A stretch of 64,000 nt of DNA. It comes from Mobula hypostoma (lineage: Eukaryota). The stretch spans positions 1,798,001 to 1,862,000 of the forward strand of contig NC_086109.1 in the NCBI RefSeq assembly GCF_963921235.1, written 5' to 3'. Under the pieces are notes generated by a model. It was not told the origin of the DNA. It searched no databases and saw only the letters and a program-made list of their open reading frames with translations. Both the position numbers and the translations under genes were made by a program. Shown here piece after piece: positions 20,517 to 48,735 of the stretch (the first letter of the stretch is position 1; each line of letters opens with the position of its first letter).

Positions 20517-20562
20517 ATGGTGTCGCCCCTGCTCTGCGTTGCCGTCTGGGTCACCTGTGTGG
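20517..20562 (+). CDS. Signal-peptide (leader) exon MVSPLLCVAVWVTCV-g of the multi-V receptor gene
   Basis: Strong Kozak context gggATGG, 15 hydrophobic codons plus 1 nt, perfect donor GTAAGT at 20563. Phase 1 matches all downstream V exons (G+CT gives ...VTCV-A-GTGDS). Confidence 0.75.
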
Positions 20563-20919
20563 GTAAGTTCAGATTGTGGTCACCAGTAGTGATTAAAGAA
20601 CAGGGGGAACAGGTTGCACAATCGTGAGGGAGTGACCGGTGTGAAGCGTGTTTCTGCGATTGGCTTTCAACCCACTGTGGTCTGAGAGAGGGGCTACTGA
20701 CTTCTCCCTCCCTTCGCCTCTCATTCCACCCACTGCTCCCCTTCTCTTCCTCAGCCACCCGCTCCCCCCACCCCCACCACCCCACGCCCTGAGTCCCAAC
20801 AATCTCATTTTCTCACCACCATTTGCAAGGTTTAGTTTCCGTGATCAGCTCTGCTTGCGGAGCAGTGAGTGTGTGAGGTGTTCGCTGCGGGCAGAAGACT
20901 TTTCTGCCCATCGTGGCAT

Positions 20920-21135
20920 TCTCTGGGTCTGCCAGACCGCTATGACAAACAGACACAAAGCATCCCCTCCCCACCCCACCCCGCCTCATTCTGTGGGTCT
21001 GCCAGACCACTATGACAAACAGACTTAAAGCATCCTCTCCACCCCCCCACCCCTCCACCCCGCCTCATTCTCTGGGTCTGCCAGACCACTACTAAAAGCA
21101 GATGCAAAGCATCCTCTCCACCACCACCCCCCGCC
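20920..21135. repeat. Three tandem ~65-75 bp copies (TCTGGGTCTGCCAGACC.CTA...AAAGCATCC.CTCC)
   Basis: Direct repeats beginning near 20921, 20991 and 21070. Confidence 0.8.
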
Positions 21136-22869
21136 ACCCTCTCGGTTTTTGCTGAGAAGCCTTGGATTATCAGACTCGCCCCTCTCTGAAGTGTTCAGAG
21201 AGCTCTGTGTTTCTATCCATAAACTCAATCTCTATCCTCCTCTTTTCCCTTTCACTCTCTCTTCCTCCATGAGTAATCTAATGATGACAGAAATAATTTA
21301 CACCTAACTGTAGGGTTGGAGAGAAGTGTTGTAGATGGGGCAAACATTCTGAGAATAATCGTGCTGTGGATGTCACTAGCTTTCGATAGATAGATACTTT
21401 CCTTACTGATTGTGGTCTGCCAGTCAGGAGGTTAAAGATCGAGTTGCAAAGGGAGGTAGGCGTCTTTACTGGATGAGGAGTCAAATGAGGGGGCAGGGTG
21501 AAGAAGCCCTGTAGATGGTGCAAGCATTGTTTCTGTGGACCGCAGTGAGGGGGAGAACTCCACACAGCAGGGAGAAGGAGATGGTTTGTCCAGCTGGTCA
21601 GGGAGGCTGTGGGACGTGGAGGGGAACCTGTAGGTGGTGGTGCTTTACCCACGTGCTTTTTTCAATCTCCTGGTAGTGTTTCTCCCATGTCATTTGTACC
21701 CTCGTCCTGACTGCTCTTCTGCAGCCTGTAGAAACTCCCTTCAGGGTCTTGTAACCTTTGAAATTCTTCAACTCTACCCACAATGTTCTTCATCTTCTGA
21801 TCCTATCATCACTCTGTTTTATGGGTTTAATTTCATTTTTTACTGACAGTGCCACTCCTCCCCCCCCCCGATGGGATGTATATCGTTAGGTGTTTAGATC
21901 CCAGCTCTGACCCTCTTTCAGCCACATCTCCATAGTGCCCACAAGCTCGTACCCACCAGTTTTGATCATGGTAATACTTGGAGAGTCTATTTCTGGAGGG
22001 TCATCCAGTGAGGCTGTACATGTACAGCTTATAGGGGATGATCACTTTGATGGATGTACTGTGCTGTAGGTCCCAGTAATCAGTGGGAATTAGAGAAGTT
22101 ACAGATAGCTGTAGGAATAATAGGATTGTTACAGGTCCCTGACAGAGAATGGGACTGCCACAGTGCCAGGGTATTGAATGGGATGGAGTTAGTTGAATGT
22201 GTCAAGTAAGGCCTTCTGAAGAAATGTGTAGATGGTTCTCAAGTTTCAGAGTAAATTCATTATCTCAGTACATATATGTCACCATATACAACACTGACAG
22301 TTGTTTTCTTGCGGTAAATCCAAGGAACAGAACCGAATCTATGAAAGACCACACACAACAGGATTTATAAACCACCAATGTGCAAAAGACAACAAACTGT
22401 GCAAAAAAAAAAGAACAATAATAACTAACTGAGCAATAAATGTTGAGAACATGAGATGAAATGTCAAGGGCTGAAGAAAATGGAATCTGATAGGAGAGGA
22501 GTGTGGAGCATGGGAGAAAGGGAAGGAGAAAGCATGCCAGATTATCAGAGAAACTTGCTCACACCGATCAGACTTAAACAAAGACACAGACCCCGGTATT
22601 TGGTTCAATTTCTTCAGTACGTGATGAAGGAGAGCCCACTAACAGACTCTGCTAAAGCAAACATAAACATATTCTTTTATGCCTTAAAATATGTGCAGTT
22701 CAGCAGTTTTCAGGATCAAGAGTTCCTGCTTAGACCTTATTGACAAGGTTCAGGATGTTTCCATACATTACACAGAATTAGGCAGAGGATCCCCACAAAC
22801 ACAAGCTGTTTCCCATCGATTAGAAGAAAGCAAGCCATCAGTCCAGTAGCTGTTGGAGGCCGAAGGAAC

Positions 22870-26059: not shown

Positions 26060-27360
26060 GGTCCCATCCCCCTCGCAAATTAGTTTAAACCTTCCTGAAC
26101 TATGCTAGCAAACCTACCTGCAAGGATATTGTTCCCCCTCAAGTTCAGCTGCAACTTATACAATCTGTACAGGTCCCACCTTCCCCAGAAGAGACCCCAA
26201 TGATCTGAAAATCTAAAACCCTGCTCCCTGCACCAACTCCTCAGCCACGCATTTAACTGAAATCTCCTCTTATTCTTACCATCACTATCATGTAGCACTG
26301 GTAGCAATCCTGAGAACACCACCCTTGAGGTCCTGTTCTTCAGCCTTCTGCCTAGTTTCTAAAACTCACACTTCAGGACCTCATCCCTCTTCCTGCCTAT
26401 GTCGTTGGTCCCAACAAGTATCACGACTTCTGGTTGCTTTCCCTCTCGTACCAGAATGTCGTGCACCCGTTCAGAGACATCCCAGACCCTGGCACCTGGG
26501 AGGCAACAAACCATGCGGGTGTCCTTCTCACGTCCACAAAATTTCCTGTCTGCTCCCCTAACTATAGAGTCTCCAATGACGACAGCTTTCCTCTTCTCTG
26601 TCCCACCCTTCTGCACCACCGGGTCAGACTCAGTGCCGGAGGCCCTGCCACCGTGGCTCACCCCGGTCGATCATCCCCGCCGACAGAATCCAGGATGGTA
26701 AACTTATTATTCAGGGGAATGGCTACAGGGGTGCTCTGCACTACCTGTCTGCTCACCTTCGCTTTCCCCCCTCTGACTGTCACCCAACGACCTGCTTCCA
26801 GCAGCCTAGCTGTGACTACCTCCCTGTAGCTCTCATCTATGACTGCCTCATTCTCCCTTATGAGTTGAAGGTCATCCAGCTGCTGCTCCAGATTCTTTAC
26901 ATGGTCTTCTAGATCACCCAGCCGCATGCACTTCTGGTAGATGTAACTCTGCGGGAGAGGGGAGAGCCCCCAAGACTGCCACATCTCACATGAGAGGCAC
27001 ATCACCGTCTCAGGAAGCATTGTAAAGCCTAGCTGGGAGCAAGCTCGTCCTCTGCCTCTTCTCGTCAAAGCCTCAAAGCTCCACTCCTTCACTGGCCCGC
27101 TCACTCACTGGCTGCTCCGCTTGAGCTACCCCTCTATTTATTTGTTTGAGGTTTTCAAACTGTTTCATCACCTGACCTCGATTGCCCAATCAGCTGCTTT
27201 CTGCTGAGTCTGAGCTATTCAAATCTTGATTGTCTAATCAACTGCTTTCTGCTGATCTGTTCAAATCTTGATTGACTTGATTGTGCAGTCCAACTGTCAA
27301 AACCGCCAGACTCTCTCGAGTCAAAACCTCAAAGCTCCACTCCTTCACTGGCCGCTTTCT
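26060..27360 (-). mobile_element. CR1 5' region: ORF1 (zinc finger/coiled coil plus SGNH esterase) and 5' UTR
   Basis: CLSCEMW...QKCMRL, VVIGDSIVRG...CCLPGARV...VGTNDIG and NNILAGRF. Confidence 0.85.
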
Positions 27361-27949: not shown

Positions 27950-29315
27950 ACATGCTTGGTAAGTTGATGGAGAAGATCCTGAGAGGCAGAATTTACGAAC
28001 ATTTGGAAAGGCATAATATGATTAGGAATAGTCAGCATAGCTTTGTCAAAGGCAGGTCGTGGCTTATGAGCCTGACTGAACATTTCGAGGATGTGACTAA
28101 ACACATTCATGAAGGCAAAGCAGTAGATGTAGTGTATATTGATTTCAGCAAGGCATTTGATAAGGTACCCCATGCAAGGCTTATTGAGAAAGTAAGGAGG
28201 CATGGGATCCAAGGGGTCATTGTTTTGTGGATCCAGAACAGGCTTGCCCACAGAAAGCAAAGAGTGGTTGTAGATGGGTCATCTTCTGCATGGAGGTCAG
28301 TCACCAGTGGTGTGCCTCAGGAATTTGTTCTGCGATTTTTACTCTTTGTGATTTTCATAAGTGACCTGGATGAAGAAGTGGAGGGATGGGTTAGTAAATT
28401 TCCTGATGACACAAAGATTGGGGGTGTTGTGGATAGTGTGGAGGGCTGTCAGAGGTTACAGCAGGACATTGATAGGATGCAAAACTGGGCTGAGAAATGG
28501 CAGATGGAGTTCAACCCAGATAAGTGTGAGGTGGTTCATTTTGGTAGGTCAATTATGATGGCAGAATATAGTATTAATGGTAAGACTCTTGGCAATGTGG
28601 AGGATCAGAGGGATCTTGGGATCTGAGTCTATGGGATACTCAAAGCAGCTGCGCAGGTTGACTCTGTGGTTAAGAAGGCGTACGGTGTATTGGCCTTCAT
28701 CAATCGTGGAATTGAATTTAGGAGCCGAGAGGTAATGTTGCAGCTATATAGGACCCTGGTCAGACCCCACTTGGAGTACTGTGCTCAGTTCTGGTTGCTT
28801 CACTACAGGAAGGATGTGGGAACCATAGAAAGGGTGCAGAGGAGATTTAGAAAGATATTGCCTGGATTAGGGATCATGCCTTATGAGAATAGTTTGAGTG
28901 AGCTTGGCTTTTTCTCCTTGGAGCGACAGAGGATGAGAGCTGACCTGATAGAGGCATATAAGATGATGAGAGGCTTGAATCATGCTGATAGTGAGAGGCT
29001 TTTTCCCAGGGCTGAAATGGCTAGCATGAGAGGGCAGTTTTATGGTGCTTGGAAGTAGGTACAGAGGAGATGTCAGGGGTTAAGTTTTTTACGCAGAGTG
29101 GTGAGTGCATGGAATGGGCTGCCCGCGGCGGTGGTGGTGGAGGTGGATATGATAGGGTCTTTTAAGAGACTCCTGGATAGGTACATGGAGCTTAGAAAAA
29201 TAGAGGGCTATGGGTAACCCTAGGTAACTTCTAAGGTAAGGACATGTTTGGCACAGCTTTGTGGGACGAAGGGCCTGTATTGTGCTGTGGGTTTTCTATG
29301 TTTCTATGTTTCTAT
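27950..29315 (+). mobile_element. 5'-truncated CR1 LINE inserted in a Rex-like 3' tail
   Basis: ORFs 27952-28626 and 28666-29058 with RT motifs and a (TTTCTATG)n tail. The host tail resumes with GATAATAAACCTGATTCTGATTCTG. Confidence 0.9.
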
Positions 29316-30347
29316 GGTAATGATAATAAACCTGATTCTGATTCTGATTCTGAATATTAAAAGACTCGGACAGATGGACGTGTAGAGGAAGTTCCCTTTA
29401 GTGGGGGTGTCCTTGACCACAGGGCACAGCCTCAAAACATAACTGAAACATAATTGCCCCTCCTTGTTCCCTTTCTCCCATTGCCCTTTGTTCTCTCCAA
29501 TCAGATACCTTCTTCTCCAGCCCTTTTCCTTTCTCCGGTGAGGGGACTCTTCCCAAAATGACAACTGTTTACTCTTTTCCATAGAGGCTGCCTGGCCTGC
29601 TGAATTCCTCCAGTATTTTGTGTGTGTTGCTTGGATTTCCAGCACGTGCATATTTTCTCATCTTTACCATTTCCCACCTACATGACTTCATCCACCATCT
29701 TCCAGCCAGTTCTCCTTCCCCTCCCCCCAGAGAAAACTAGAAGCAAACACACGATATTTACTAAAAGTTAACAAGCAGGTGATAATTCAAACATAAACTC
29801 AAACAAACAAAGCTAAAACCACAAGAAAAAGGACAATTAAAAAATAAAAATTGTAGACCTTAATCCGACAACGTCACTGTGAAGAACCAGTGGTCAGGGT
29901 CAGCCGAGAGGACCAGTGCCACAGTCGACCTCTGCAGAAGGACAGGGTGGACGAGCTTCATTCTGTACATGACCTGTGCACTGGGAGTGGGTGAAAGGAC
30001 AGTGTAGATGGTTATTTCCCGTATTCCCTCATTGTGTTCACTCTCTCCAAACACTACAAACCTTTTCTCCAGACTGGAGCCCATTTGCCATGTCTCTGCC
30101 TCCCTGTCATGACAACCGATATCTGGCTGCAGGCTGCAACTCCCTTCCTCAGGGCCGGGTGTGGAGAGTCTTCACTCTGTTCCCCCAGTGGGCTCACTGT
30201 GTGATGGAGGAACTGTGTGCCGGGTCTCTCTCAGGGTCAGGAGTCAGATGATGGGCCACATGGCCTGCTCCTGTAACTATGATCCACCCGGCTCTGATTC
30301 TACAGTTACTGTATTCACCTGCTGACTGTCTCCTCTTGTCTCCTCAG

Positions 30348-30668
30348 CTGGGACTGGGGATTCCCCGACCACTGTGAATGGAACACGGGGACAGTCGGTC
30401 TCCTTACATCCTGGGATCCCAGTCGGACCGGACGTTGTTGAGCTTGTGTGGAGACGGTTGTCACCCAGGATGAAGATAGTGACATATTCAAACAAGATCA
30501 GTGACTATTACGGATCTGAGGAGTACAAGCGACGGATAACTCTTCATCCCGGGAACTTCGGTCTGGAAATCCGTGATCTACAGAAAAGTGACTCTGATGT
30601 TTATGAGGTGTCTGTTACAGCAAGTACAGGAGCACAGACTCAGAACAAAATGCGACTGGATGTGTACG
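30348..30668 (+). CDS. Ig V-set exon A1, cysteine-less CD2/SLAM/CEACAM N-domain-like
   Basis: Acceptor CTGAC...TCTTGTCTCCTCAG, donor G|GTGAGT, 321 nt, phase 1-1. V-frame motifs: VNG.RGQSVSL, VWRR, KRRITL, LEIRDL..SD..VY and MRLDVY. Confidence 0.9.
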
Positions 30669-31929
30669 GTGAGTGAGATGCTGCGGAGGGGCCCGGGTTT
30701 CATCAGTTCCTGAAGCACCCCAATTAATGATCCTGTGTGTTCCCCTGTTTACTGAACCCCACTGACTGCCCGTGTCCAGAGCTGGGCTCACGGTCCCAGT
30801 GTAGTGAGGTTGAGTCAGTGTGAGTCTGGAGGACACACTCACCACATCCCCGGAGACTGGACCAGAGACTGTGAAGCATCGAACTGTCAATGGGAAACCT
30901 CGTGACTCTGAGGCTGGAGGAGCTGAGCAGATGGGGAACAGGGAACGGGAGATAGGCTGATCTGGTGGAAGGGACTGGTGGACGGGCTAAACAGTCTATA
31001 TCTGTGGGTCAGTTAAACAGATCCCTCTGTATCCCCAGGTCAAAGGCCTGGTCTTTCATGTTCAGGGATCCCATTTTCAGAGGCACTGCTTGTTAATTCC
31101 CCAGACTGAGGTCTGAGCTCAGCAAGGTGTTTATTCCTCAGCCTTCATGCTGTGCTGTGCTGAGTGAGACCCTGTGTGTTCATTACACTGAATATAATGT
31201 CCCAGTGAGTGACACAGTACATGGACACAACAGTACACTCACACACAGCAATATGGTTCCTGACTCACTCCAACAGTAATATCACATTCACAATAATCTC
31301 ACTCAGCAACGTCTGCCTGAGAAATCTCCTCCACCTCAGGTTTAACGGGTCCCATTGGAGGGAGGAGAATGTCAGAACGTGGGGAATGGAACATCAGAGG
31401 AACAGCTCCTCAGCTCATGACGTGCTGCCAAACTCATTGCTAATGGAACCCAGTTAAGCTAATCCCTTCTGACTGTTCGTGCTCCATATGCCTTTATTCT
31501 CTAGACATTCATGTGTGTATCTGACAGTCTCTCAAAAATCTCTCTGGCCTTTGCCTCTATCACCACTCCTGGCAGCCCATTTCAGGCTCCCACCACTCTC
31601 TGTGTAAAGAAAAACTTGCCCTGCACATCTCCTTTGAATTTACCCCTGTCACTTTAAAGGAACCATCTCTGGTATTAGAGACTTTTTATTTGAGATACAG
31701 CAGGGAATAGTCCCTTCCGGGACTTTGAGCCATGCAACCCAGAAATCCCTGAATTTAACCCTAGCCATGAGAATTATCTCGGCAATGAAAGGGTTCTTCC
31801 AGGGTTGTATCTCTCATCTCTATGGGTCTGTTGCTGGTGCAGTTTATCTTTATCTCTTCTGTTTCATCTCCGTTTGGTCTCAGAGCCAACGTGGTGGAGT
31901 TAGCGGTCAAGAGTGCTGATTTCTCTTCC

Positions 31930-32340
31930 ATCTGTTGGTTCGAACTAAACAGCAGGGTGATGTTGTCTGCAAACTCTTAGTGATCAAGTTGCTGCCACAT
32001 AGTCCACTGGATCCATTTCATTTTTCACTTGTTGTCTGTTTCATTATCTAGTTTGTTGCCAACAGGAACAGGAAAGGACCCAAACATTCCAGCTCCACCC
32101 CAGTGTTGACATTGAAGCTTTCTGCCAGTTTTCCCACATGTATGACTTTGCATGACATGTTGTAGAGTTCCTAAAGATATTGACAAATTTCTGTGATATT
32201 CCATAATGTTTCATCAGTTTCCATATGGTGTTTGTGTCTAAGTATCGAAGGTTTTGTTGTAGTGATGAAGTTGACATAGAGAGAAATATTCCATTGTTCT
32301 CAAAGGTTCAAAACTCACCTTTCTTTGGAAGCTTTATTTG
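31930..32340 (-). mobile_element. RTE-like LINE RT fragment (duplicate at ~39852-40262)
   Basis: IWKLMKHYGISQKFVNIFRNS and a degenerate QWT.W.QL...FADNI motif. Confidence 0.65.
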
Positions 32341-32409
32341 GGAAACACATAGGGGAGAGATGTTGAGGCTGAAATTAGATGATGCGGACACGCCTGGTCC
32401 AACCTCGAG

Positions 32410-33055
32410 ATCTGGCTCAGCATAGAGGGTGATGGAGATGGGAGTTCATTGATAGCCTATGCTTCTTTGCGAGGTAAGGGCCCAAGAAGATGAAAGAGTT
32501 AATAATTGATTGCTCTGGGCCTGTAGATTTGGAGAATGACAAGGGGTTGTGTGGTGGAATATCATTGAAACCCATTGAAAGAGGCTGCAAAGGATTGTAA
32601 ATTGTAAATTTAGTCAGCTCTGTCTTGGGTACTAGCCTACAAAGTACCCAGGACATCTTCAAGGAGCGGGATCTCAGAAAGGCAGCGTCCAGTATTAAGG
32701 CCCTCCAGCACCAAGGGCATGCCCTTTTCTCGCTGTTACCATCAGGCAGGAGGTACAGACGCCTGAAGGCACACACTCAGTGATTCAAGAACAGCTTCTT
32801 CCCTTCTGCCGTCTGATTTCTAAATGGACATTGAACCAGTGAGCACTACCTTACTTTTTAAAATATATTTATTTCTGTTTTTGCACTATTTAAATCTAAT
32901 CTATATCGATATACGTAAATTAATTCACTTATTTATTATTATTATTTTATTTGTTTTTCTTCTCCTTCTATATTACGTACTGCATTGAACTGCTGCTGCT
33001 AAGTTAACTAATTTTACGACCCATGCCGGTGATAATAAACCTGATTCTGATTCTG
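32410..33055 (+). mobile_element. Rex1/Babar-like LINE 3' end (duplicate at ~40332-40977; relatives at 27380-27950 +, 18360-18600 -, 21270-21650 -, 52130-52700 -)
   Basis: HQGHALFSLLPSGRRYRRLKAHTQ.FKNSFFP motif and an (ATTCTG)n tail. Confidence 0.7.
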
Positions 33056-33246
33056 AATATTGAAAGACCGAAACAGATGGACTTGGAGAGGATGCTTCAA
33101 ATGGGGGGTGTGCCTTTGACCACAGGGTACAGCCTCAAAACACAATGATGTCCCTTTGAAACAGAAATGCCCCTCCTCTTCCCCTTCTCCCATTACCCTC
33201 TGTTCTCTCCTATCAGATACCTTCTTCTCCAGCCCCTTTCCTTTCT

Positions 33247-33279
33247 CTGATGAAGGGTCTCGGCCCGAAACATCGACTG
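33247..33279 (+). ncRNA. Penelope-derived minimal type I hammerhead-ribozyme-like motif (identical copy at 41169-41201)
   Basis: CTGATGA-A-GGG-TCTCGG-CCC-GAAA-CATC-GACTG. The catalytic core and helix II are intact, but the 5' strand of helix I is lost and the ACGT palindrome has decayed to ACAT, so it is probably inactive. Confidence 0.55.
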
Positions 33280-34047
33280 TTCACTCTTTTCCATAGATAC
33301 TGCCTGGCATTCTGAGTTCCTCCAGCATTTTGTGAGTGTTGTTTGGATTTCCAGCATCTTCAGATTTTCTCATCTTTATCTTTCCCCACCCACCTGACCA
33401 CCCACCATCTTCCAGCCAGTTCTCCTTCCTCTCCCCCCACAGGAAGCTAGAACCAAAGATACCCCATTTACTAAAAGTTGACAAACAGGTGATAATTCAA
33501 ATATAAACTCAAACAAACAAAGCTAAAACCACAAGAAAAAGGACAATTAAAAAATAAAGATTGTAGACCTTAATCCGACAACGTCACTGTGAAGAACCAG
33601 TGGTCAGGGTCAGCCGAGAGGACCAGTGCCACAGTCGACCTCTGCAGAAGGACAGGGTGGACGAGCTTCATTCTGTACATGACCTGTGCACTGGGAGTGG
33701 GTGAAGGGACAGTGTAGACGGTGATTTCCCGTATTCCCTCATTGTGTTCACTCTCTCCAAACACTACAAACCTTTTCTCCAGACTGGAGCCCATTTGCCA
33801 TGTCTCTGCCTCCCTGTCATGACCATCGATATCTGGCTGCAGGCTGCAACTCCCTTCCTCAGGGCCGGGTGTGGAAAGTCTTCACTCTGTTCCCCTGGTG
33901 GGCTCACTGTGTGATGGAGGAACTGTGTGCCAGGTCTCTCTCAGGGTCAGAAGTCAGATGATGGGCCGCATGGCCTGCTCCTGTAACTGTGATCCTCCCG
34001 GCTCTGATTCTACAGTTACTGAATTCACCTGCTGACTGTCTCCTCAG

Positions 34048-35430: not shown

Positions 35431-36134
35431 CCCTGGGAAAAAAATACTATCTGTCTACTTCATCTGTGTCCTTATAAATGTCATAAGCTTGTATCAGCTC
35501 CGACACTCAGAGGAAACAGCCCAAATTAGTCCAATGGAATACTCCAGATGTAGCTTGATCAGAGTTTTTAAAGATGTAGCATAACTTCCTGACTTCTGAA
35601 CTCAGTGCCTCGACTGATGAAGACAAGCATGTAAAGACCCTCTTGGGCACCCGATCAACATGCAGCCACGTTTCCCCACCCATGTCTGCATCTGATCCAT
35701 GTCCAAATGCATCTATTGGCGCTCCTCTGCACCATCCACAACACCGACAGTCTGTTGGAGGCCTTTGGCCCACCTAGAGCCTATTCCCCACTCACTGAAA
35801 TCAGGGTTGGTCTGACCCTGATCTCAGCTCTACTTTCCTGCCTGTTTCCACCCTCTCCCCAAATCCTCTCCAGACCAAAACTCTGTCTGAACCTTGAATA
35901 CAGTGACTCAGCCTCCACAACTCTCTGGGGAAGAAAATTCCATCGATTCCTGAACCTTAGAGAAGAGAAATCCTTCCTCATATCTGTCTGAAATTATGGT
36001 CCCTTATTCTGAAACTGTGCCCTCGTTTTAGATCATACAGGAGGGGGAAACATCCTCCCAAAACCACCCCCCCCACTCCGATCCTGCTCCAGTCACTGAA
36101 CTCACCGGCTGACTGCCTCCTCTTGTCTCCTCAG

Positions 36135-36437
36135 AGCGGATGGGGACCGTGACAAGACCTTGGGGACAGTGGGTCTCCCTACCTGCTGGGATCACACGTG
36201 GGCTGGACGTTTCTCAGGTGGTGTGGAGAAGAGACGGAACCACAATAGCAGAATATGCAAATGGGAACATTTTCTACTTCGGTCCTGAGGAGTACAAGCG
36301 ACGGATAACTCTTCATCCCGGGAACTTCAGTCTGGAAATCCGTGATCTACAGAGAGAGGACACTGGTGATTATAAAGTGACTGTTACATTAAGTAGAGGA
36401 GGACAGATTCAGATGGAAATGCGACTGGAGGTGTACG
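36135..36437 (+). CDS. Ig V-set exon B1 (ERMGTVTRPWGQWV...MRLEVY)
   Basis: Acceptor TCTTGTCTCCTCAG, donor G|GTGAGT, 303 nt, phase 1-1, open frame, no Cys. Confidence 0.9.
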
Positions 36438-38275
36438 GTGAGTGAGACGCTGCGGAGGGGCCCGGGTTTCACCGGTTCCTGAAACACCCCTAATTACTGG
36501 CTGAGGGCAGATCCTGTGTGTTTCCCTGTTAACTGAGCCCCACTGACTGCCCGTGTCCAGAGCTGGGCTCACGGTCCCAGTGTAGTGAGGCTGAGTCAGT
36601 GTGAGTCTGGAGGACACACTCACCACATCCCCGGAGACTGGACCAGAGGCTGTGAAGCATCAAACTGTCAATGGGGAACCTCGTGACTCCGAGGCTGGAG
36701 GAGATGAGCAGATGGGGAACAGGGAACGGGAGATAGGCTAATATGGTGGAAGGGACTTGTGGATGGGCTGAACGGTCTATATCTGTGGGGCAGTTAAACA
36801 GATCCCTCCGTATCCCCAGGTCAAAGGCCTGGTCTGTCATGTTCAGAGATCCCATTTTCAGAAGGCACCTCTTGTTAATTCCCCAGACTGAGGTCTGAGC
36901 TCAGCAAGGTGTTTATTCCTCAGCCTTCATGCTGTGCTGTGCTGAGTGAGACCCTGTGTATTCATTACACTGAATATAGTGTCCCAGTGAGTGACACAGG
37001 ACACGGACACAACAGTACACTCACACACATCAATATGGTTCCTGACTCATTCTCACAGTAATATCACATTCACAATAATCTCACTCAGCAGCGTCTGCCG
37101 GAGAAATCTCCTCCACCCCAGGTTTAATGGGTTTGCTTTGCCTCTACCACCACTCCCGGCAGCCCATTTCAGGCTCCCACCACTCTGTGTGTAAAGAAAA
37201 TCTTGCCCCACACATCTCCTTTGAATTTACCCCTGTCACTGTAAATGCACAATCTCTGGTATTGGACTCCTCTTATTTGATTTTTTAAAAAATTTTATCG
37301 AGATACAGAAGGGAATAGTCCCTTCCGGGATTTGAACCACACTGCCCAGCAATCCCCCAATTGTAACCCAGCCTAATCACAGGACAATTTATAATGACCA
37401 ATTAACCATGCAATTGGTATGTCCTTGGACTGTGGGAGGAAACCAGAGCACACAGGGGAATCCACGTGGACACGGGGAGAATGTACAAACTCCTTACGGG
37501 CAGCGGGAATTCAGTCTGGTTCACTGGTACTGTAAAGTGTTGTGCTAAGGACTACCCATTCGTGCCACCCCTGGGAAAAAAATACTATCTGTCTACTTCA
37601 TCTGTGTCCTTATAAATGTCATAAGCTTGTATCAGCTCCGACACTCAGAGGAAACAGCCCAAATTAGTCCAATGGAATACTCCAGATGTAGCTTGATCAG
37701 AGTTTTTAAAGATGTAGCATAACTTCCTGACTTCTGAACACAGTGCCTCGACTGATGAAGACAAGCATGTAAAGACCCTCTTGGGCACCCGATCAACATG
37801 CAGCCACGTTTCCCCACCCATGTCTGCATCTGATCCATGTCCAATTGCATCTATTGGCGCTCCTCTGCACCATCCACAACACCGACAGTCTGTTGGAGGC
37901 CTTTGGCCCACCTAGAGCCTATTCCCCACTCACTGAAATCAGGGTTGGTCTGACCCTGATCTCAGCTCTACTTTCCTGCCTGTTTCCACCCTCTCCCCAA
38001 ATCCTCTCCAGATCAAAACTCTGACTGAACCTTGAATACAGTGACTCAGCCTCCACAACTCTCTGGGGAAGAAAATTCCATCGATTCCTGAACCTTAGAT
38101 AAGAGAAATCCTTCCTCATATCTGTCTGAAATTATGGTCCCTTATTCTGAAACTGTGCCCTCGTTTTAGATCATACAGGAGGGGGAAACATCCTCCCAAA
38201 ACCGCCCCCCCCCCCACTCCGATCCTGCTCCAGTCACTGAACTCACCGGCTGACTGCCTCCTCTTGTCTCCTCAG

Positions 38276-38578
38276 AGTGGATGGGGACCGTGACAAGACC
38301 TTGGGGACAGTGGGTCTCCCTACCTGCTGGGATCACACGTGGGCTGGACGTTTCTCAGGTGGTGTGGAGAAGAGACGGAACCACAATAGCAGAATATGCA
38401 AATGGGAACATTTTCTACTTCGGTCCTGAGGAGTACACGCGACGGATAACTCTTCATCCCGGGAACTTCAGTCTGGAAATCCGTGATCTACAGAGAGAGG
38501 ACACTGGTGATTATAAAGTGACTGTTACATTAAGTAGAGGAGGACAGATTCAGATGGAAATGCGACTGGAGGTGTACG
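38276..38578 (+). CDS. Ig V-set exon B2
   Basis: Differs from B1 at 2 nt, both non-synonymous (R>W, K>T). Same splice sites. Confidence 0.9.
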
Positions 38579-41500
38579 GTGAGTGAGACGCTGCGGAGGG
38601 GCCCGGGTTTCACCGGTTCCTGAAACACCCCTAATTACTGGCTGAGGGCAGATCCTGTGTGTTTCCCTGTTAACTGAGCCCCACTGACTGCCCGTGTCCA
38701 GAGCTGGGCTCACGGTCCCAGTGTAGTGAGGTTGAGTCAGTGTGAGTCTGGAGGACACACTCACCACATCCCCGGAGACTGGACCAGAGGCTGTGAAGCA
38801 TCGAACTGTCAATGGGGAACCTCGTGACTCCGAGGCTGGAGGAGCTGTGCAGATGGGGAACAGGGAACGGGAGATAGGCTAATATGGTGGAAGGGACTGG
38901 TGGACGGGCTAAACAGTCTATATCTGTGGGTCAGTTAAACAGATCCCTCTGTATCCCCAGGTCAAAGGCCTGGTCTTTCATGTTCAGGGATCCCATTTTC
39001 AGAGGCACTGCTTGTTAATTCCCCAGACTGAGGTCTGAGCTCAGCAAGGTGTTTATTCCTCAGCCTTCATGCTGTGCTGTGCTGAGTGAGACCCTGTGTG
39101 TTCATTACACTGAATATAATGTCCCAGTGAGTGACACAGTACACGGACACAACAGTACACTCACACACAGCAATATGGTTCCTGACTCACTCCAACAGTA
39201 ATATCACATTCACAATAATCTCACTCAGCAACGTCTGCCTGAGAAATCTCCTCCACCTCAGGTTTAACGGGTCCCATTGGAGGGAGGAGAATGTCAGAAC
39301 ATGGGGAATGGAACATCAGAGGAACAGCTCCTCAGCTCATGACGTGCTGCCAAACTCATTGCTAATGGAACCCAGTTAAGCTAATCCCTTCTGACTGTTC
39401 GTGCTCCATATGCCTTTATTCTCTAGACATTCATGTGTGTATCTGACAGTCTCTCAAAAATCTCTCTGGCCTTTGCCTCTATCACCACTCCTGGCAGCCC
39501 ATTTCAGGCTCCCACCACTCTCTGTGTAAAGAAAAACTTGCCCTGCACATCTCCTTTGAATTTACCCCTGTCACTTTAAAGGAACCATCTCTGGTATTAG
39601 AGACTTTTTATTTGAGATACAGCAGGGAATAATCCCTTCCGGGACTTTGAGCCATGCAACCCAGAAATCCCTGAATTTAACCCTAGCCATGAGAATTATC
39701 TCGGCAATGAAAGGGTTCTTCCAGGGTTGTATCTCTCATCTCTATGGGTCTGTTGCTGGTGCAGTTTATCTTTATCTCTTCTGTTTCATCTCCGTTTGGT
39801 CTCAGAGCCAACGTGGTGGAGTTAGCGGTCAAGAGTGCTGATTTCTCTTCCATCTGTTGGTTCGAACTAAACAGCAGGGTGATGTTGTCTGCAAACTCTT
39901 AGTGATCAAGTTGCTGCCACATAGTCCACTGGATCCATTTCATTTTTCACTTGTTGTCTGTTTCATTATCTAGTTTGTTGCCAACAGGAACAGGAAAGGA
40001 CCCAAACATTCCAGCTCCACCCCAGTGTTGACATTGAAGCTTTCTGCCAGTTTTCCCACATGTATGACTTTGCATGACATGTTGTAGAGTTCCTAAAGAT
40101 ATTGACAAATTTCTGTGATATTCCATAATGTTTCATCAGTTTCCATATGGTGTTTGTGTCTAAGTATCGAAGGTTTTGTTGTAGTGATGAAGTTGACATA
40201 GAGAGAAATATTCCATTGTTCTCAAAGGTTCAAAACTCACCTTTCTTTGGAAGCTTTATTTGGGAAACACATAGGGGAGAGATGTTGAGGCTGAAATTAG
40301 ATGATGCGGACACGCCTGGTCCAACCTCGAGATCTGGCTCAGCATAGAGGGTGATGGAGATGGGAGTTCATTGATAGCCTATGCTTCTTTGCGAGGTAAG
40401 GGCCCAAGAAGATGAAAGAGTTAATAATTGATTGCTCTGGGCCTGTAGATTTGGAGAATGACAAGGGGTTGTGTGGTGGAATATCATTGAAACCCATTGA
40501 AAGAGGCTGCAAAGGATTGTAAATTGTAAATTTAGTCAGCTCTGTCTTGGGTACTAGCCTACAAAGTACCCAGGACATCTTCAAGGAGCGGGGTCTCAGA
40601 AAGGCAGCGTCCAGTATTAAGGCCCTCCAGCACCAAGGGCATGCCCTTTTCTCGCTGTTACCATCAGGCAGGAGGTACAGACGCCTGAAGGCACACACTC
40701 AGTGATTCAAGAACAACTTCTTCCCTTCTGCCGTCTGATTTCTAAATGGACATTGAACCAGTGAGCACTACCTTACTTTTTAAAATATATTTATTTCTGT
40801 TTTTGCACTATTTAAATCTATTCTATATCGATATACGTAAATTAATTCACTTATTTATTATTATTATTTTATTTGTTTTTCTTCTCCTTCTATATTACGT
40901 ACTGCATTGAACTGCTGCTGCTAAGTTAACTAATTTTACGACCCATGCCGGTGATAATAAACCTGATTCTGATTCTGAATATTGAAAGACCGAAACAGAT
41001 GGACTTGGAGAGGATGCTTCAAATGGGGGGTGTGCCTTTGACCACAGGGTACAGCCTCAAAACACAATGATGTCCCTTTGAAACAGAAATGCCCCTCCTC
41101 TTCCCCTTCTCCCATTACCCTCTGTTCTCTCCTATCAGATACCTTCTTCTCCAGCCCCTTTCCTTTCTCTGATGAAGGGTCTCGGCCCGAAACATCGACT
41201 GTTCACTCTTTTCCATAGATACTGCCTGGCATTCTGAGTTCCTCCAGCATTTTGTGAGTGTTGTTTGGATTTCCAGCATCTTCAGATTTTCTCATCTTTA
41301 TCTTTCCCCACCCACCTGACCACCCACCATCTTCCAGCCAGTTCTCCTTCCTCTCCCCCCACAGGAAGCTAGAACCAAAGATACCCCATTTACTAAAAGT
41401 TGACAATAACAGGTGATAATTCAAATATAAACTCAAACAAACAAAGCTAAAACCACAAGAAAAAGGACAATTAAAAAATAAAGATTGTAGACCTTAATCC

Positions 41501-41971
41501 GACAACGTCACTGTGAAGAACCAGTGGTCAGGGTCAGCCGAGAGGACCAGTGCCACAGTCGACCTCTGCAGAAGGACAGGGTGGACGAGCTTCATTCTGT
41601 ACATGACCTGTGCACTGGGAGTGGGTGAAGGGACAGTGTAGACGGTGATTTCCCGTATTCCCTCATTGTGTTCACTCTCTCCAAACACTACAAACCTTTT
41701 CTCCAGACTGGAGCCCATTTGCCATGTCTCTGCCTCCCTGTCATGACCATCGATATCTGGCTGCAGGCTGCAACTCCCTTCCTCAGGGCCGGGTGTGGAG
41801 TGTCTTCACTCTGTTCCCCCGGTGGTCTCACTGTGTGATGGAGGAACTGTGTGCCAGGTCTCTCTCAGGGTCAGAAGTCAGATGATGGGCCGCATGGCCT
41901 GCTCCTGTAACTGTGATCCTCCCGGCTCTGATTCTACAGTTACTGAATTCACCTGCTGACTGTCTCCTCAG

Positions 41972-42292
41972 CTGGGACTGGGGATTCCCCGACCACTGTG
42001 AATGGAACACGGGGACAGTCGGTCTCCTTACATCCTGGGATCCCAGTCGGACTGGACGTTGTTGAGCTTGTGTGGAGACGGTTGTCACCCAGGATGAAGA
42101 TAGTGACATATTCAAACAAGATCAGTGACTATTACGGATCTGAGGAGTACAAGCGACGGATAACTCTTCATCCCGGGAGCTTCAGTCTGGAAATCCGTGA
42201 TCTACGGAGAGAAGACACTGGTGATTATGAGGTGAGTGTCACAGCAAGTTCAGGAGCACAGACTCAGAACAAAATGCGACTGGATGTGTACG
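41972..42292 (+). CDS. Ig V-set exon A3
   Basis: 321 nt, phase 1-1, open frame, intact AG/GT. Confidence 0.9.
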
Positions 42293-43029
42293 GTGAGTGA
42301 GATGCTGCGGAGGGGCCCGGGTTTCATCAGTTCCTGAAACACCCCCAGTTAATGGGTGAGGGCAGATCCTAGAGGTGTACGATGAGTGAGACACCACGGT
42401 GGGGGGGCGGCAGGAGAGCAGGTTTTACCGGTTCCTGAAACACCCCTAATGTGTGGGTGAAGGCAGATCCTGTGTGTTCCCCTGTTTACTGAACCCCACT
42501 GACTGCCCGTGTCCAGAGCTGGGCTCACGGTCCCAGTGTAGTGAGGCTGAGTCAGTGTGAGTCTGGAGGACACACTCACCACATCCCCGGAGACTGGACC
42601 AGAGGCTGTGAAACATCGAACTGTCAATGGGAAACCTCGTGACTCTGAGGCTGGAGGAGCTGAGCAGATGGGGAACAGGGAACGGGAGATAGGGAGATGA
42701 TCTGGTGGGAGGGACTGGTCGATGGGCCGAACAGTCTATATCTGTGGGTCAGTTAAACAGATCCCTCCGTATTCCCAGGTCAAAGTCCTGGTCTGTCATG
42801 TTCAGGGATCCCATTTTCAGATGGCACTGCTTGGTAATTCCCCAGACTGAGGTCTGAGCTCAGCAAGGTGTTGATTCCTCAGTCTTCATGCTGTGCTGTG
42901 CTGAGTGAGACCCTGTGTGTTCATTACACTAATATAGTGTCCCAGTGAGTGACACAGTACACGGACACAACAGCACACTCACACACACCAATATGGTTCC
43001 TGACTCACGGAAACAGTAATATCACTTTC

Positions 43030-46000
43030 ACAATAACTGGGGCAGAACGGGCTGGCAACCCAATCTGTGTCATCTGAGAGGAGGACCCCCACAAAAGCTC
43101 GATGAATCGAAGGGAATGATACCCCCGGGGTGCCCGAGAGGTGGGGGGGGTGGAGGATGAGCAACCCAGTCGGACAGACACAATGGGATCAGAACCAGGC
43201 GATGAACGAACGACTATGAGTAAACACAAAATACTCTGCAGATGCTGGAGTCAAAGCAACACTCACAACACGCTGAAGGAACTCAGCAGGTCGGACAGCA
43301 TCCGTGGAAACGATGAGTCAATGTTTCGGGCGGGAACCCTTCATCAAGATTGAAGAGAGAAGGGGCAGAGGCCCTATAAAGAAGGTGGGGGAGGGTGGGA
43401 AGGAGAAGGCTGGTAGGTTCCAGGTGAAAAACCAGTAAGGGGAAAGATAAAGGGGTGGGGGAGGGGAAGCAGGGAGGTGACAGGCAGGAAAGGCGAAGAA
43501 AGAATAGGGGAAAACACAATGGGTAGTAGAAGGAGGTGGAACCATGAGGGAGGTGATAGGCAGCTGAAGGGGGGGGGGCAGAGTGAAATTTGGATAGGGA
43601 AAGTGAGGGGGCGGGAATTACCGGAAGTTGGAGAATTCTATATTCATACCAAGGGGCTGGAGGCTACCTAGACGGTATATGAGGTGTTGCTCCTCCAACC
43701 TGAGTTTAGCCTCATCATGGCAGTAGAGGAAGCCATGTATGGACATATCCGAATGGGAATGTGAAGCAGAGTTGAACTAGGTGGCTACCGGGAGATCCTG
43801 TCTGTTGTGGGGACGGAGCAGAGGTGCTCGATGAAGCAGTCCCCCAATCTGTGTCAGGTTTCACCGATGTAGAGGAGGCCGCACCGGGAGCACCAGATGC
43901 AATAGATGACCCCAACGGACTCACAAGTGAAGTGTTGCCTCACCTGGAAGGACTGTTTGGGGCCCTAAATGGTGGCAAGAGAGGAGGTGTAGGGACAGGT
44001 GATGAAGATGTCAACCAAATTCCGGAGGCAATGGTGAAGGGAGGGGTCGATAGGAAGCTACAAGCCATGACAACAGTCATTGTCAGCATCGCAGCGGAAC
44101 GGTTCGGAGAAGAGGAGAAGGAAGGCTCCAATACACTTTACTCGAAGAACCGAAGAGCATTGAGGATCCACAACATCAGGCAGGAGATGAAAGTGCTGAA
44201 GTCCCAATAGAAGGAGGCAGGAGAAGAGGAACGCATTGGCTTGGCCCAGCTGATGTGCATACTACGAAAGAAGATCAGGGTCCTCTGCTGGGCAGAGTGG
44301 CATCGGAGGCGTCGTTGTGAAAGGGCCCGAAAACGTGCTACCTTTATCGCCAACCCCTTCAAGTTCACCAAGGAGTTGCTGGGGGAGAAGCGCACTGGGA
44401 AACTGGCCTGTTCGCAGGAAGACATAGACCAACATCTGAAGAAGATATATAATGATCCTGAAAGAGAGCAGGAGTTGGGGGAGTGCGACATCCTAATAGT
44501 CCCACCTGAACCGGATGTGCAGTTCGACATGTCAGAGCTGCAACTAAAGGAAGTCAGAGAGGTCGTCCGCAAAGCAAGGGCAAGCTCGGCTCCAGGACCA
44601 AGCAACACCTCGTACAAAGTGTACAAAAACTGCCCCAAACTCCTGCTGCGTCTGTGGAAGATCCTGAGAATCTTCTGGAGAAGGGGGAAGATCCCAGAAC
44701 AGCGGAGAGTGGCTGAAGGGGTGTGGATCCCGAAGGAGGAAAATGCCACCCAGATAGACCAGTTTCACATCATCTCCCTGCTGTGTGTCGAGGCGAAGAT
44801 CTTCTTCAGTGCAGTTTCTAACCGGCTGTGTACCTACCTAGCAAAGAACACCTACATTGATACATCAGTCCAGAAGGGTGGCATTTCAGGGATGCCAGGC
44901 TGTCTGGAGCACATCGGTGTGGTGACACAGCTCATCAGGGAGGCCAGAGAGAACAAGGACAACCTGTCAGTGTTGTGGCTCGACCTGGCAAATGCATATG
45001 GCTCCATTCCGCACAAGCTGGCGCAGCTCACATTGACCAAATATCACGTCCCCAGCAGAGTCAGAGACCTTATCACTGATTATTACAGCAACTTCAGGAT
45101 GAGGGTCTCTTCAGGAGCAATTACATCAACCTGGCGCAAGATGGAGGTCGGCATCATAACAGGGTGCACTATCTCAGTGACACTGTTCTCCCTAGCCATG
45201 AACATGCTCACTAAGTCTGCTGAACCAGAGTGCAGAGGGCCCAGAATGAATTCCACTCAACGGCAACCACCTATCAGGGCATTCAGGGATGAGCTCACAG
45301 TCACCACAGAATCAGTCCCAGGCTGCCGGTAGATTCTGCAGGGGCTCGAAAAGCTGGTGGAGTGGGCCCGGATGCCTTTCAAACCTGCCAAATCAAGATC
45401 GATGGTGCTGAGGAAAGGGAAGGTGGAGAACAAGTTCCGGTTCAGCATCGCAGGCACAGCCATCCCAACCATCACAGAAAAGCCAGTCAAGAGCTTAGGC
45501 AAAGTTTTTGACAGCTCTTTAAGGGACACAACATCCACTCAGGCAACCTGCACCGAGTTGGATGGCTGGCTGAAATCTGTGGACAAGTCTGGCCTACCTG
45601 GGAAGTTTAAAGCCTGGGTGTATCAGCATGGCATTCTTCCCAGAATCTTGTGGCCCCTCCTCTTCTATACAGTTTCGATCTCGACAGTCGAAACCTTAGA
45701 GAGGAGGGTTAGCAACCACCTCAGGAGATGGCTGGGGCTGCCAAAGAGCCTGAGCAGCATCGCACTCTATGGACACCACAACAAACTGCAACTGCCGTTC
45801 AAATCCTTGGAGGAAGAATTCAAGGTAACTAGTGCCAGAGAAGTGCTACAGTATAGGGACTCAAGTGACCCGAAGGTGGCCAGAGCAGGGATCTAAGTAA
45901 GTACTGGCAGGAAGTGGAGGGCAGAGGAAGCTGTTCAGGAGGCAGAGGCGAGTCTGCGTCACAGGAGGCTGGTGGGAATGGTCACACGAGGCCGAGCTGG

Positions 46001-46520
46001 GCTAGGATCCTTTCCAACTCCCCAAATGGACACCAGAGGGAAGGAAAGGTGTCGTCTAGTTCAGGAGGAGGTGAGAGCAGTAGTGGAGGAGATGAGAGCC
46101 TGCAAGGCGGTGGGAATGAAGCAACAGGGAGCTTGGACAAGATGGGAGAATGCAGTTGAGCAGAAAGTGAATTGGGCTGAGCTTTGGGAAGCCGAACCAC
46201 ACTGCATCCAATTTCTCAACCAGATAGTGTACGATGTGCTTCCAAGCCCATCAAACCTGCACACATGGGGCAAGGCAGAGTCATCTGCATGCCCACTGTG
46301 CTCCAAGCGAGGAACCCTGGAGCACATCCTCAGCGGCTGCGCAAGGGCACTCGGTGAGGGACGGTACCGATGGAGGCATGATCAGGTCCTGAAGACCATC
46401 GCTGAAGCCATTAGTGCAGGAGTTGAGTGAGCGAAGCGGTCCCGACCCTCCAAGCAGACCATTGCCTTTGTCAGAGCTGGGGAGCAGCCAATACCTGCCA
46501 AAAGAACATCAGAATAGACC
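43030..46520 (+). mobile_element. Hero-like RLE-class non-LTR retrotransposon, inactivated and interrupted
   Basis: One continuous frame from ~44000 to 46500 with RT motifs (WLDLANAYGSIPH, GIITGCTISV, FRDELTV) and a CCHC knuckle (CPLCSKRGTLEHILSGC...RWRHDQVL). The endonuclease C-terminus is truncated. The clade call is from recalled motif similarity. Confidence 0.8.
43230..43995 (-). mobile_element. Penelope 3' portion (GIY-YIG remnant plus terminal hammerhead-like motif at ~43316-43351) inserted in the Hero-like element
   Basis: Reverse complement of the 61070-61740 type sequence. Minus-strand motif CAATC-TTGATGA-AGGGTTCCCGCCC-GAAACATT-GACTC. Confidence 0.8.
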
Positions 46521-46530
46521 CTTCTGGGAT

Positions 46531-46965
46531 TTGAACCACACTGCAAAGCTTGTCCAGGAACTGGATTCTCTGACTGTGGTGTCTGAAAAGAGGATGCTGT
46601 CCAAGTTGCATGCCATCTTGGACAATATCTCCCATCCACTACATAATGTATTGGTTGGGCACAGGAGTACATTCAGCCAGAGACTCATTCCACCGAGATG
46701 CAGCACAGAGCGTCATGGGAAGTCATTCCTGCCTGCGGCCATCAAACTTTACAACTCCTCCCTTGGAGGGTCAGACACCCTGAGCCAATAGGCTGGTCCT
46801 GGATTTATTTCCTGGCATAATTTACATATTACTATTTAACTATTTATGGTTTTATATTGCTATATTTGTACTCTATTCTTGGTTGGTGCAACTGTAACGA
46901 AACCCAGTTTCCCTCGGGATCAATAAAGTATGTCTGTCTATCTATCTATCTATCTATCTATCCAT
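46531..46965 (+). mobile_element. Rex1/Babar-like LINE 3' end with (TCTA)n tail, truncating the Hero-like ORF
   Basis: Near-identical to 5411-5770. Confidence 0.8.
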
Positions 46966-48362
46966 CTATCCATATCATAATCCTTTCACAAAGAAAATCA
47001 CTACAGTCCACTGAAATCCAAACTCTCCCCCATTTTCCAGTGTTGCCTTCAGCTGTTCTTTTTGACTTTTCCTCCCATAATCCCAGCTCAACAAGACAGC
47101 TCCTCTCTGTGTCCGATCTCAGGAGTGTGTGGAACAGCGCGGAATGAACAAGGATTCTGTGTTTTACTCGTAACTTCTTCCGGTTAAGATGGTGCTGGTG
47201 AACCTCTGCGATCTCTGGGTGGCAGTTAACAAAACAAGGACAGCAACTAAATACTTTGTTAACCACACTTCTGGCAAACGATCTTCACAGTAGTCTGTAA
47301 CTTCTGTTTGGGGTTGGAGGCAATTCGAGGCGGCGGAGCCGAGGCGAGGCGAGGCGGTGGACCCATTGCCGACAGCGTGGGAAATCAAGAAAGATCAGGC
47401 ACGGGCGGAATCGAAACTGCATGGTCAAGGCACCAGACGTGACTGAGCACAATCTACGGACGGAGATTTACGGGCCGAATCAATGCCACGGGGTCAGGCA
47501 CCAGACACAACTAAGCATGATCTTTGGATGGAGATTTGCAGGAGAATTGAAGTGGTAGAAAAGGTCAGGTTGTTGAGGCCTGAGGCAAGGCTTGGGCAAC
47601 CTCAGATGTTGCGATGGAGAGTTACGCTCCGAGCCAGATTGGAAACGTCAGGGTGTCAGAAAGGTCTGGGTGACGGGGACCGAGGTGAGGTTCGGGCTGA
47701 TTAAGGTCGCTGCTCCACAATGTTTACATGGCTCTACACTAAAGTATGGGACTCTCTTGCAGACCTCAGTTCAGAAACACGACTGGCTTGCAGTTACTGT
47801 TTACATGATGGATTGTTTCTATTGCACATTGAGTATTCGACGGTCTTTTTTCATATCGGTGTGTTTGTTTTTGTGTTTCTTTGTCTCGTGGCTGCCTGTC
47901 AGGAGATGAATCTGGAGGTTCTATAATGTATGCACATTTTGATAAACTGTACTTTGTACTTTGAACTTTAATTGGGGATAGAGTCAGGGATACAGGGTGA
48001 TGGAGAGGGGTTTCTGTGGGAAGGTGTGAGGGAGTTGGATTAACATCAATTGAGATACAGTCAGCGATACAGGGCACTGTGGGAGTGTGGTTACCAAGTG
48101 ACAGTGTGAAGGAACTTGTTTAACATCAGTGGAGATACAGTTGGTGACATTGTTGGCTGTGATTTAAGGGGAGTGATGTGAGGATGATTGGAACTGGGAG
48201 TGTGGGAATGGGATTAATTCTGTAATCCTTTCTCTCCATCCCCCTCCCCCTTCATGTTGGGGAGTTTTATCTGGCCTGTGGTGAGAGGGAGCAGATCCAT
48301 CGATTCCTTGTCACTGGGTGTATGAGGATGGGATTAATCACAAAATATTTTTTCCTCCCCAG

Positions 48363-48515
48363 ATCCTGCTGACAGATCGTCACCCGCTGCTTGGATCATT
48401 CCTGTCCTTGTGATACTCATTCTGCCCCTTGTGTGTTGCTATATATATAGAAAGAGGGAGTATCTTCACTCACACTGGGACAAACGTATGGGAAAGAAAT
48501 CCGGTACATCTGACG
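48363..48515 (+). CDS. Transmembrane exon TM1: (D)PADRSSPAAWIIPVLVILILPLVCCYIYRKREYLHSHWDKRMGKKSGTSD
   Basis: Acceptor TTTTTTCCTCCCCAG, phase 1 matching the V exon ends, 19-aa hydrophobic stretch followed by RKR, donor G|GTAGGT at 48516. Confidence 0.8.
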
Positions 48516-48560: not shown

Positions 48561-48735
48561 ATTATAGATCGTCACACACTGGTTGTATAATTCCCATTGT
48601 GATACTCAGTTTGATCATTGCGTGTGTCGTATTGCATATAATCCGGGGTCATCTTTGCTCTGTAAACTCTGGCATCATTGTCACTCATGCAAGTCCACCC
48701 CAATGGGAAAGGCATCAAGAAGGATACATATGGCA
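48561..48735 (+). other. In-frame duplicate of the TM exon (TM2: DYRSSHTGCIIPIVILSLIIACVVLHIIRG...), homologous donor apparently lost
   Basis: Shares AGATCGTCAC, ATTCC, TGTGATACTCA and ATGGGAAAG blocks with TM1 at a ~192-nt offset. Preceded by CCAG in phase 1. Confidence 0.65.

Follow-up and report, generated by a model that had tools for sequence, protein, structure and literature searches.

The stretch of DNA analysed here (the window) comprises 64,000 nucleotides of the genome of the devil ray Mobula hypostoma (contig NC_086109.1, positions 1,798,001 to 1,862,000 of the forward strand); all coordinates below are positions within it. It contains, on its + strand, the annotated gene LOC134355364. 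The gene occupies positions 20517-49588 and consists of one leader exon, five phase 1-1 V exons devoid of cysteine, one phase-1 transmembrane (TM) exon and a short tail exon (Table 1). The identification is based on two observations. RefSeq isoform X2 of LOC134355364 (P0166, XP_062921212.1, 392 aa) can be aligned with the window as six segments, each 100% identical, which follow each other in the order leader, V1, V3, V4, TM and tail, and the gene span recorded for the longest product (P0212), 29,072 bp, is that of 20517-49588. Thus, the window locus is LOC134355364. An initial annotation, made from the sequence alone, had described one leader, five phase 1-1 V exons lacking cysteine with intact AG/GT borders and one phase-1 TM exon, and had proposed that they may form a splice-diversified receptor of a possibly undescribed kind. 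All these parts can be read in the sequence. As described below, the main product is very probably a type I membrane protein composed of a signal peptide, three serial V domains (V1-V3-V4), a TM segment and a tail.

A tblastn search of the window with the open reading frames (ORFs) of the V exons detected exactly five copies, all on the + strand. Every V exon is preceded by an AG acceptor and followed by the donor G|GTGAGT. The exons fall into two types, A (V1, V2 and V5; 321 nt) and B (V3 and V4; 303 nt), and these lengths, together with the borders, make all five phase 1-1. The number of cysteines is zero in each. Relaxed tblastn and blastn searches of the window, for which C2 (n=3), leader, TM and tail sequences of paralogs were also used as queries, revealed no C2 exon and no second leader, and the only additional TM-like sequence to surface was a degenerate relic. 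In the initial annotation, too, no further leader, TM or intact C2 exon had been found among the V exons; the relic and the tail exon had gone unnoticed there. The relic starts 46 nt past the donor of the real TM exon, retains an RSS...IIP...IL hydrophobic stretch, is without an evident in-phase donor and is absent from the RefSeq isoforms.

The peptides encoded by the V exons were recognized by the Pfam V-set profile, every one of them with 29-36 bits (cut-off 26), and weak matches to Receptor_2B4 were also obtained. In a phmmer search against solved structures the best matches were SLAMF6 (3e-5), CD48 (1e-4) and CD84 (2e-4), with CEACAM1 and CD2 lower down. V1 was modelled with AlphaFold from 49 family domains; the model had a pLDDT (predicted local distance difference test score) of 92.9 and the V-type strand pattern. 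When this model was used as a Foldseek query, 2B4, CD48, CD2 and CD84 ranked first, with query-normalised TM-scores (template modelling scores) of 0.76-0.85, and NTB-A was also among the best matches. Judged by sequence and by predicted fold the V domains are of the CD2/SLAM type, in agreement with the initial annotation. They have the V-set domain without the canonical B-F disulfide, as indicated by the Pfam scores, the zero cysteines and the model. A membrane-proximal C2-set domain with conserved disulfides, which would give a V-C2 ectodomain, was not found, the RefSeq protein being V-V-V-TM, nor was the immunoreceptor tyrosine-based switch motif (ITSM) of the SLAM receptors proper: residues 346-392 of P0166, which form the tail, contain no TxYxx[VI], and their tyrosines occur only at the membrane edge and in the context EYLHS. 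The TM segment of P0166 has no charged residue.

All three RefSeq isoforms (X1, X2 and X3) share the V1-V3-V4 ectodomain, and V2 is included in none of them. Isoform X1 (P0212) has the order leader-V1-V3-V4-V5; in this product V5 is cut at 'DTGDYE', after which the TM exon is read in a shifted frame to a stop. The cut corresponds to an internal donor, GAG|GTGAGT, which is unique to V5 among the V exons, arises from one C-to-G change relative to V2, and, when used, puts the TM exon out of frame. In isoform X3 (P0211) leader-V1-V3-V4 is followed by a 59-residue exon ending in a stop. This exon starts at a cryptic acceptor inside the pre-A intron and its product is soluble; unused copies of it are present at 30072-30248 and 33782-33958. 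The acceptor tract 'cctcttgtctcctcag' is kept in the used exons V1, V3 and V4, and 9 nt of it are missing from V2 and V5. Downstream of V4, the in-frame continuation past the donor reads Gly-Glu-stop, so read-through RNA would encode a soluble V1-V3-V4.

The protein deduced for the membrane form, V1 (A)-V3 (B)-V4 (B), would cross the membrane with a single TM helix, carry Cys-Cys in its juxtamembrane part and end in a tail of approximately 40 residues that has neither an ITSM nor an ITIM (immunoreceptor tyrosine-based inhibitory motif). Processing of the transcript is predicted to yield this single membrane form and several truncated or soluble ones. A truncated form would be made if V4 were spliced to V5 and, from the internal donor of V5, to the frameshifted TM exon (isoform X1), and a soluble form if V4 were spliced to the cryptic exon (isoform X3); another soluble form may come from read-through past V4, as suggested by the RNA coverage of the V4-V5 interval described below. 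The isoform variety is mostly a matter of membrane-bound versus truncated or soluble versions of one V1-V3-V4 ectodomain, not of combinatorial V choice.

Table 1. Features of LOC134355364 and its surroundings in the window (positions are those of the window)
Feature	Position	Strand	Remarks
Leader (signal peptide) exon, coding part	20517-20562	+	ATG at 20517; donor G|GTAAGT, phase 1; identical to P0166 residues 1-15 (100%)
Tandem segmental duplication mosaic with all five V exons	29338-43036		preA-V-post three times, preB-V-post twice
V1, A-type V exon lacking cysteine, 321 nt, phase 1-1	30348-30668	+	Domain 1 in all three RefSeq isoforms
V2, A-type V pseudo-exon, 321 nt	34048-34368	+	In-frame TAG at 34281-34283; in no RefSeq isoform
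V3, B-type V exon, 303 nt, phase 1-1	36135-36437	+	Protein domain 2
V4, B-type V exon, 303 nt	38276-38578	+	Protein domain 3; near-identical recent copy of V3 (301/303 nt)
Alternative terminal coding exon of RefSeq isoform X3	41707-41885	+	P0211 residues 325-383 match at 100%
V5, A-type V exon, 321 nt, open frame	41972-42292	+	Internal consensus donor GAG|GTGAGT at 42231|42232
TM and juxtamembrane exon, 153 nt, phase 1-1	48363-48515	+	Identical to P0166 residues 325-375 (100%)
Degenerate TM exon duplicate	48561-48661	+	Used by no model; tblastn 42% identity over 36 aa; blastn 80% over 46 nt
Last coding exon, 17-residue C-terminal tail and stop	49536-49588	+	Identical to P0166 residues 376-392 (100%)

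Splicing of the V exons was followed in RNA contigs (Logan short unitigs) from four runs of one organism, in which 51-74% of the sampled words of 34000-42400 were present. Among the contigs on 34000-39999, a GT..AG joint between an A-type donor and the V3 acceptor was detected in all four runs, with depths of 157, 130, 12 and 51; the acceptor side of V3 (AGCGG...) is gene-specific among the comparable paralogs. Given that the last 30 nt are identical in V1, V2 and V5, the A donor is most simply that of V1, as in the RefSeq models. The GT..AG joint between the V3 donor and the V4 acceptor was detected in run X1 (depth 158). The intron between V3 and V4 was almost uncovered by contigs while the exons and the V4-V5 interval were covered, and this near silence indicates that the runs represent RNA, not DNA; contamination of the runs with DNA was rejected on the same grounds. 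A contig of run X2 had the sequence '...GATTATGAG' joined straight to the start of the TM exon of LOC134355364 (loose end at 36373). Since only V5 has GAG|GTGAGT at that place, this contig confirms the frameshifting junction of isoform X1.

When contigs were aligned to 36420-42419 at 97% likeness, the V4-V5 interval (38600-42000) was covered end to end by near-perfect ones, among them one of 1,448 nt with a single difference. In runs X1 and X2 its depth was 20-30% of that of the V4 exon, and unspliced contigs crossed the V4 donor and the V5 acceptor. This RNA could be the result of intron retention with an alternative 3' end, or belong to a transposon-borne transcript. Neither a V4-to-V5 joint nor a joint from the normal donor of V5 was listed among the short contigs of the four runs, and with the V5 query no Logan protein fragments spanning V-V or V-TM junctions were found.

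Other contigs led away from the gene. Loose ends past A-type donors entered sequence coding for 'PVSGTVIMVQ', which is the C2 exon of LOC134355366/7 (P0007, P0156) and lies outside the window, and loose ends past the B donor entered the TM exon of another paralog. Contigs aligned to V2 mismatched it at 34129, 34170 and 34281 (CAG instead of TAG). They were not accepted as proof that V2 is expressed, since V5, or the A exon that comes first in LOC134355363, fits them as well or better. In three short segments (35200-35400, 37220-37620 and 40420-41020) the RNA depth ran into thousands, which is what dispersed repeats would give. The hexamer AATAAA occurs at 40956 and 41477, within the RNA-covered V4-V5 interval.

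All five V exons are parts of a mosaic of tandem segmental duplications, and so they do not represent five independent coincidences. In self-blastn the duplicated units were 87-98% identical. There are 2 differences in 303 nt between V3 and V4 and 8 in 321 between V2 and V5, and the duplicated exons are no better conserved than the introns flanking them. When A units are compared with B units, a stretch that begins approximately 170 nt inside the exon and extends over 450 nt of the downstream intron is 93-100% identical (for example 34218-34780 versus 36300-36860). Identity falls to 50-78% in the 5' exon half, and the sequences further upstream are unalignable. This step at mid-exon suggests that recombination or gene conversion had its breakpoint within the V exon, which accounts for the shared D-E-F core. 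In V1, the residues encoded by the 3' half (30500-30668) are exactly those of the V domain (GLEIRDLQKSDSDVYEVSVTASTGAQTQNKMRL) of the V-C2-V paralogs LOC134355366/7, and V1 looks like a hybrid exon that came from an exchange between paralogs. Recent segmental duplication and intra-exon recombination would have added three exons, V2, V4 and V5. V4 would be an intact copy of V3 that was taken into the product, V2 a copy killed by its nonsense codon, and V5 a copy crippled by the single-base change that created the internal consensus donor.

To place the gene among its relatives, database proteins and a domain tree can be considered together. An exhaustive, profile-free search with the V5 peptide retrieved ray proteins in which two or three V stretches were matched. 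Members of the family are present in Hemitrygon akajei, Hypanus sabinus, Mobula hypostoma, Mobula birostris, Pristis pectinata and skates, and carry the RefSeq names 'Ly-9-like', 'SLAM family member 5/8-like', 'CD48-like' or 'uncharacterized'; the paralogs LOC134355361 to 367 form a tandem cluster. In a tree of 63 V domains, with supports from the Shimodaira-Hasegawa-like approximate likelihood ratio test (SH-aLRT), V1, V2 and V5 fall into a clade with domain 1 of all three-V ray proteins and with the V domains of V-C2 SLAM-like genes (SH-aLRT 99), and V1 groups with the V domains of LOC134355366/7 (SH-aLRT 99). V3 and V4 are sisters inside the group of second domains (B). In devil rays and stingrays alike, the B' domains, which come third, fall into a single clade (SH-aLRT 93), from which it follows that the three-V layout A-B-B' predates the split between devil rays and stingrays. 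On the evidence of the tree, A-B-B' with no C2 domain appears to be the ancestral layout of the family, and LOC134355364 appears to have lost its B', in the place of which a fresh B copy, V4, now stands.

These results can be confronted with the view that the five V exons are interchangeable, alternative cassettes, or, in a more general form, that regulated inclusion and skipping of phase-1 V exons produces functional receptors with two, three or four V domains. We consider such a system unlikely. The phase (1-1) and the intact AG/GT borders of the five exons are compatible with it, and a joint between an A-type donor and a V4-type acceptor was found in runs X2 and X3 (depth 39 each) beside the A-to-V3 joint. 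In a paralog of M. birostris, one RefSeq isoform (P0215) omits the A exon and another (P0169) the B' exon, both in frame, the M. birostris model P0220 joins B to A to TM in frame, and the neighbouring gene LOC134355363 has its A and B exons doubled and, according to its model (P0214), about five V domains. Against it, V1-V3-V4 is common to the three RefSeq isoforms, the RNA joints are serial (A to V3 to V4), V2 carries a nonsense codon, V5 was seen to be used solely through the frameshifting internal donor, and neither a V4-to-V5 joint nor one from the normal V5 donor was listed for the four runs. The A-to-V4-type contig of run X3 has a Trp-to-Leu change at 38312, which is in no annotated paralog compared; this joint is as likely to stem from a single-B allele, or from a copy that lacks annotation, as from skipping of V3. 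Moreover, it is common in the superfamily for a phase-1 Ig exon to be skipped in frame now and then, and this does not amount to a dedicated device. Combinatorial or mutually exclusive in-frame exon use following a Dscam-like logic was not found, rare forms being beyond the reach of short contigs.

It was correctly noticed in the initial annotation that V2 has a stop codon and must be skipped for a membrane protein to be made. The conclusion that this implies cassette splicing does not follow: V2 is a nonsense pseudo-exon, so that its omission is no evidence of a regulated choice. Of the proposed multi-V chain with variable domain number, the multi-V chain has stood, with three V domains, and variability is left only as a residue, in the A-to-V4-type joint and in the M. 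birostris isoforms. Taken together, the idea of splice diversification is weakly supported. The gene had already been annotated, its three-V layout recurs in other rays, and a new diversification system is not supported.

Two other explanations concern the origin of the additional exons. If the assembly were in error, the gene could have the simpler layout A-B(-A), and the extra V exons could have come from haplotypic duplication or mis-assembly. The tandem units are indeed 97-98% identical (V3/V4, V2/V5), and a transcript with the A-donor to V4-type acceptor joint could derive from a haplotype with a single B exon. We regard this as very unlikely, as the joint between a B donor and a B acceptor in RNA requires two B exons per transcript, and the contigs on the V4-V5 interval have 0-2 differences per 1.4 kb, whereas the upstream copy is about 3% different; in addition, RefSeq models both B exons, and the exon doubling in the neighbouring paralog (P0214) is of the same kind. 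It is extremely unlikely that V2 and V5 once belonged to genes of their own, of which only headless remains are left, for although each A unit has about 1 kb of shared upstream sequence including an ORF that is the terminal exon of isoform X3, no leader, TM or C2 exon lies beside V2 or V5, V5 is spliced into LOC134355364 transcripts (isoform X1; the contig of run X2), and the units repeat intron-exon-intron blocks in tandem within the gene.

The interpretation of LOC134355364 as a gene for a three-V membrane protein must be weighed against several points. The short Logan unitigs are confounded by close paralogs, and the leader-to-V1 and V4-to-TM junctions are taken from the RefSeq model, not from direct reads. 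The A-to-V4-type joint of runs X2 and X3 could mean that V3 is occasionally skipped. The normal donor of V5 could act at a low level and give rise to a four-V membrane form, as contigs show presence, not absence. Finally, any statement on function is derived from homology. By analogy with CD2, CD48 and SLAM, the protein may take part in cell-cell recognition between leukocytes through V-V contacts, and the absence of an ITSM would suit the role of a ligand or adhesion partner rather than that of a SAP-coupled signalling receptor.

Several repeated sequences surround the exons. A tandem array with a period of approximately 32 bp occupies positions 1-2311 of the window. The intron between the TM and tail exons contains a G-rich minisatellite with a unit of about 30 bp (48738-49461), the reverse strand of which is a long proline-rich ORF, probably meaningless. 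Remains of retrotransposons, in the form of reverse-transcriptase-like ORFs or fragments, are present in introns at 43824-46800 (+), 27952-29058 (+) and 26359-27104 (-).

Among known systems the SLAM/CD2 family (SLAMF6/NTB-A, CD84, CD48, 2B4, CD2, CD58) is the closest. The ray gene shares with it the V-set domain without the inter-sheet disulfide and the type I membrane topology, and its V domains find their best sequence and fold matches there. It may lie in a tandem cluster with conventional V-C2 SLAM-like genes; the same 98.2-Mb chromosome record carries, beside the paralogs, V-C2 genes named 'SLAM family member 5-like' and 'Ly-9-like'. The ray protein differs in that it has three serial V domains without a C2-set domain and a short tail lacking the ITSM (TxYxxV/I), and coupling to SAP is not expected. 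Ly-9 (SLAMF3), after which RefSeq names ray orthologs 'Ly-9-like', has likewise more than one V domain and an ectodomain grown by internal tandem duplication. However, Ly-9 repeats the V-C2 pair (V-C2-V-C2) and has ITSMs, whereas in the ray gene only V is repeated and there is no C2.

In the CEACAM/PSG family, especially in the rodent PSGs, there are several tandem N domains, which are V-like, lack cysteine and are encoded by phase-1 exons. Exons and genes of this family duplicate rapidly, and isoforms vary in domain number and in being membrane-bound or soluble. Unlike the ray protein, CEACAM/PSG proteins retain C2-type A/B domains. CEACAM N domains were among the weaker sequence and fold matches, the ray sequence being closer to SLAM/CD48.

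Chains with at least four CD2-like V domains lacking cysteine were also found elsewhere: in a loach (P0059), in a Logan protein (P0022) and in cyprinid proteins with 8-15 matched stretches. Some of them have a TM segment and many predicted isoforms, and they are likewise uncharacterised. Their identity to the ray sequences is only 26-33%, and the expansions were probably independent. The occurrence of such chains in teleosts and in a Logan assembly means that the serial-V architecture is not unique to rays. Four of these proteins (P0059, P0022, P0010 and P0027, from cypriniforms and a Logan SRA-run assembly) have 4 to 15 V domains, and one has at least 28 predicted isoforms. This multi-V family is perhaps a better place than the ray locus to seek splice diversification.

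We found no literature on SLAM/CD2 genes of cartilaginous fish, nor on this ray family. What was already known is the gene itself, through automatic annotation; what is undescribed is the ray family with V domains in series and no C2. LOC134355364 is an ordinary, fast-evolving member of this undescribed, C2-less multi-V branch of CD2/SLAM. As a speculative extension, to which we attach a low probability, mid-exon recombination, changes in exon copy number (possibly polymorphic between haplotypes) and exon skipping might act together in the all-V ray branch, so that genes, individuals and transcripts would differ in how many V domains there are and of which type; if true, this would constitute a recognition repertoire of combined germline and splicing origin.

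With the tempting claim of a new splice-based diversification in cartilaginous fish removed, the interest that remains is modest: an uncharacterised ray branch of CD2/SLAM that has dropped C2 and carries V domains without cysteine in series, with breakpoints inside the V exon. At this locus exons can be seen arising and dying: one recent exon is in use, another has been killed by a stop and a third crippled by a new donor. As such it serves as a clean case for the evolution of immune-type receptor genes, not as a new mechanism.

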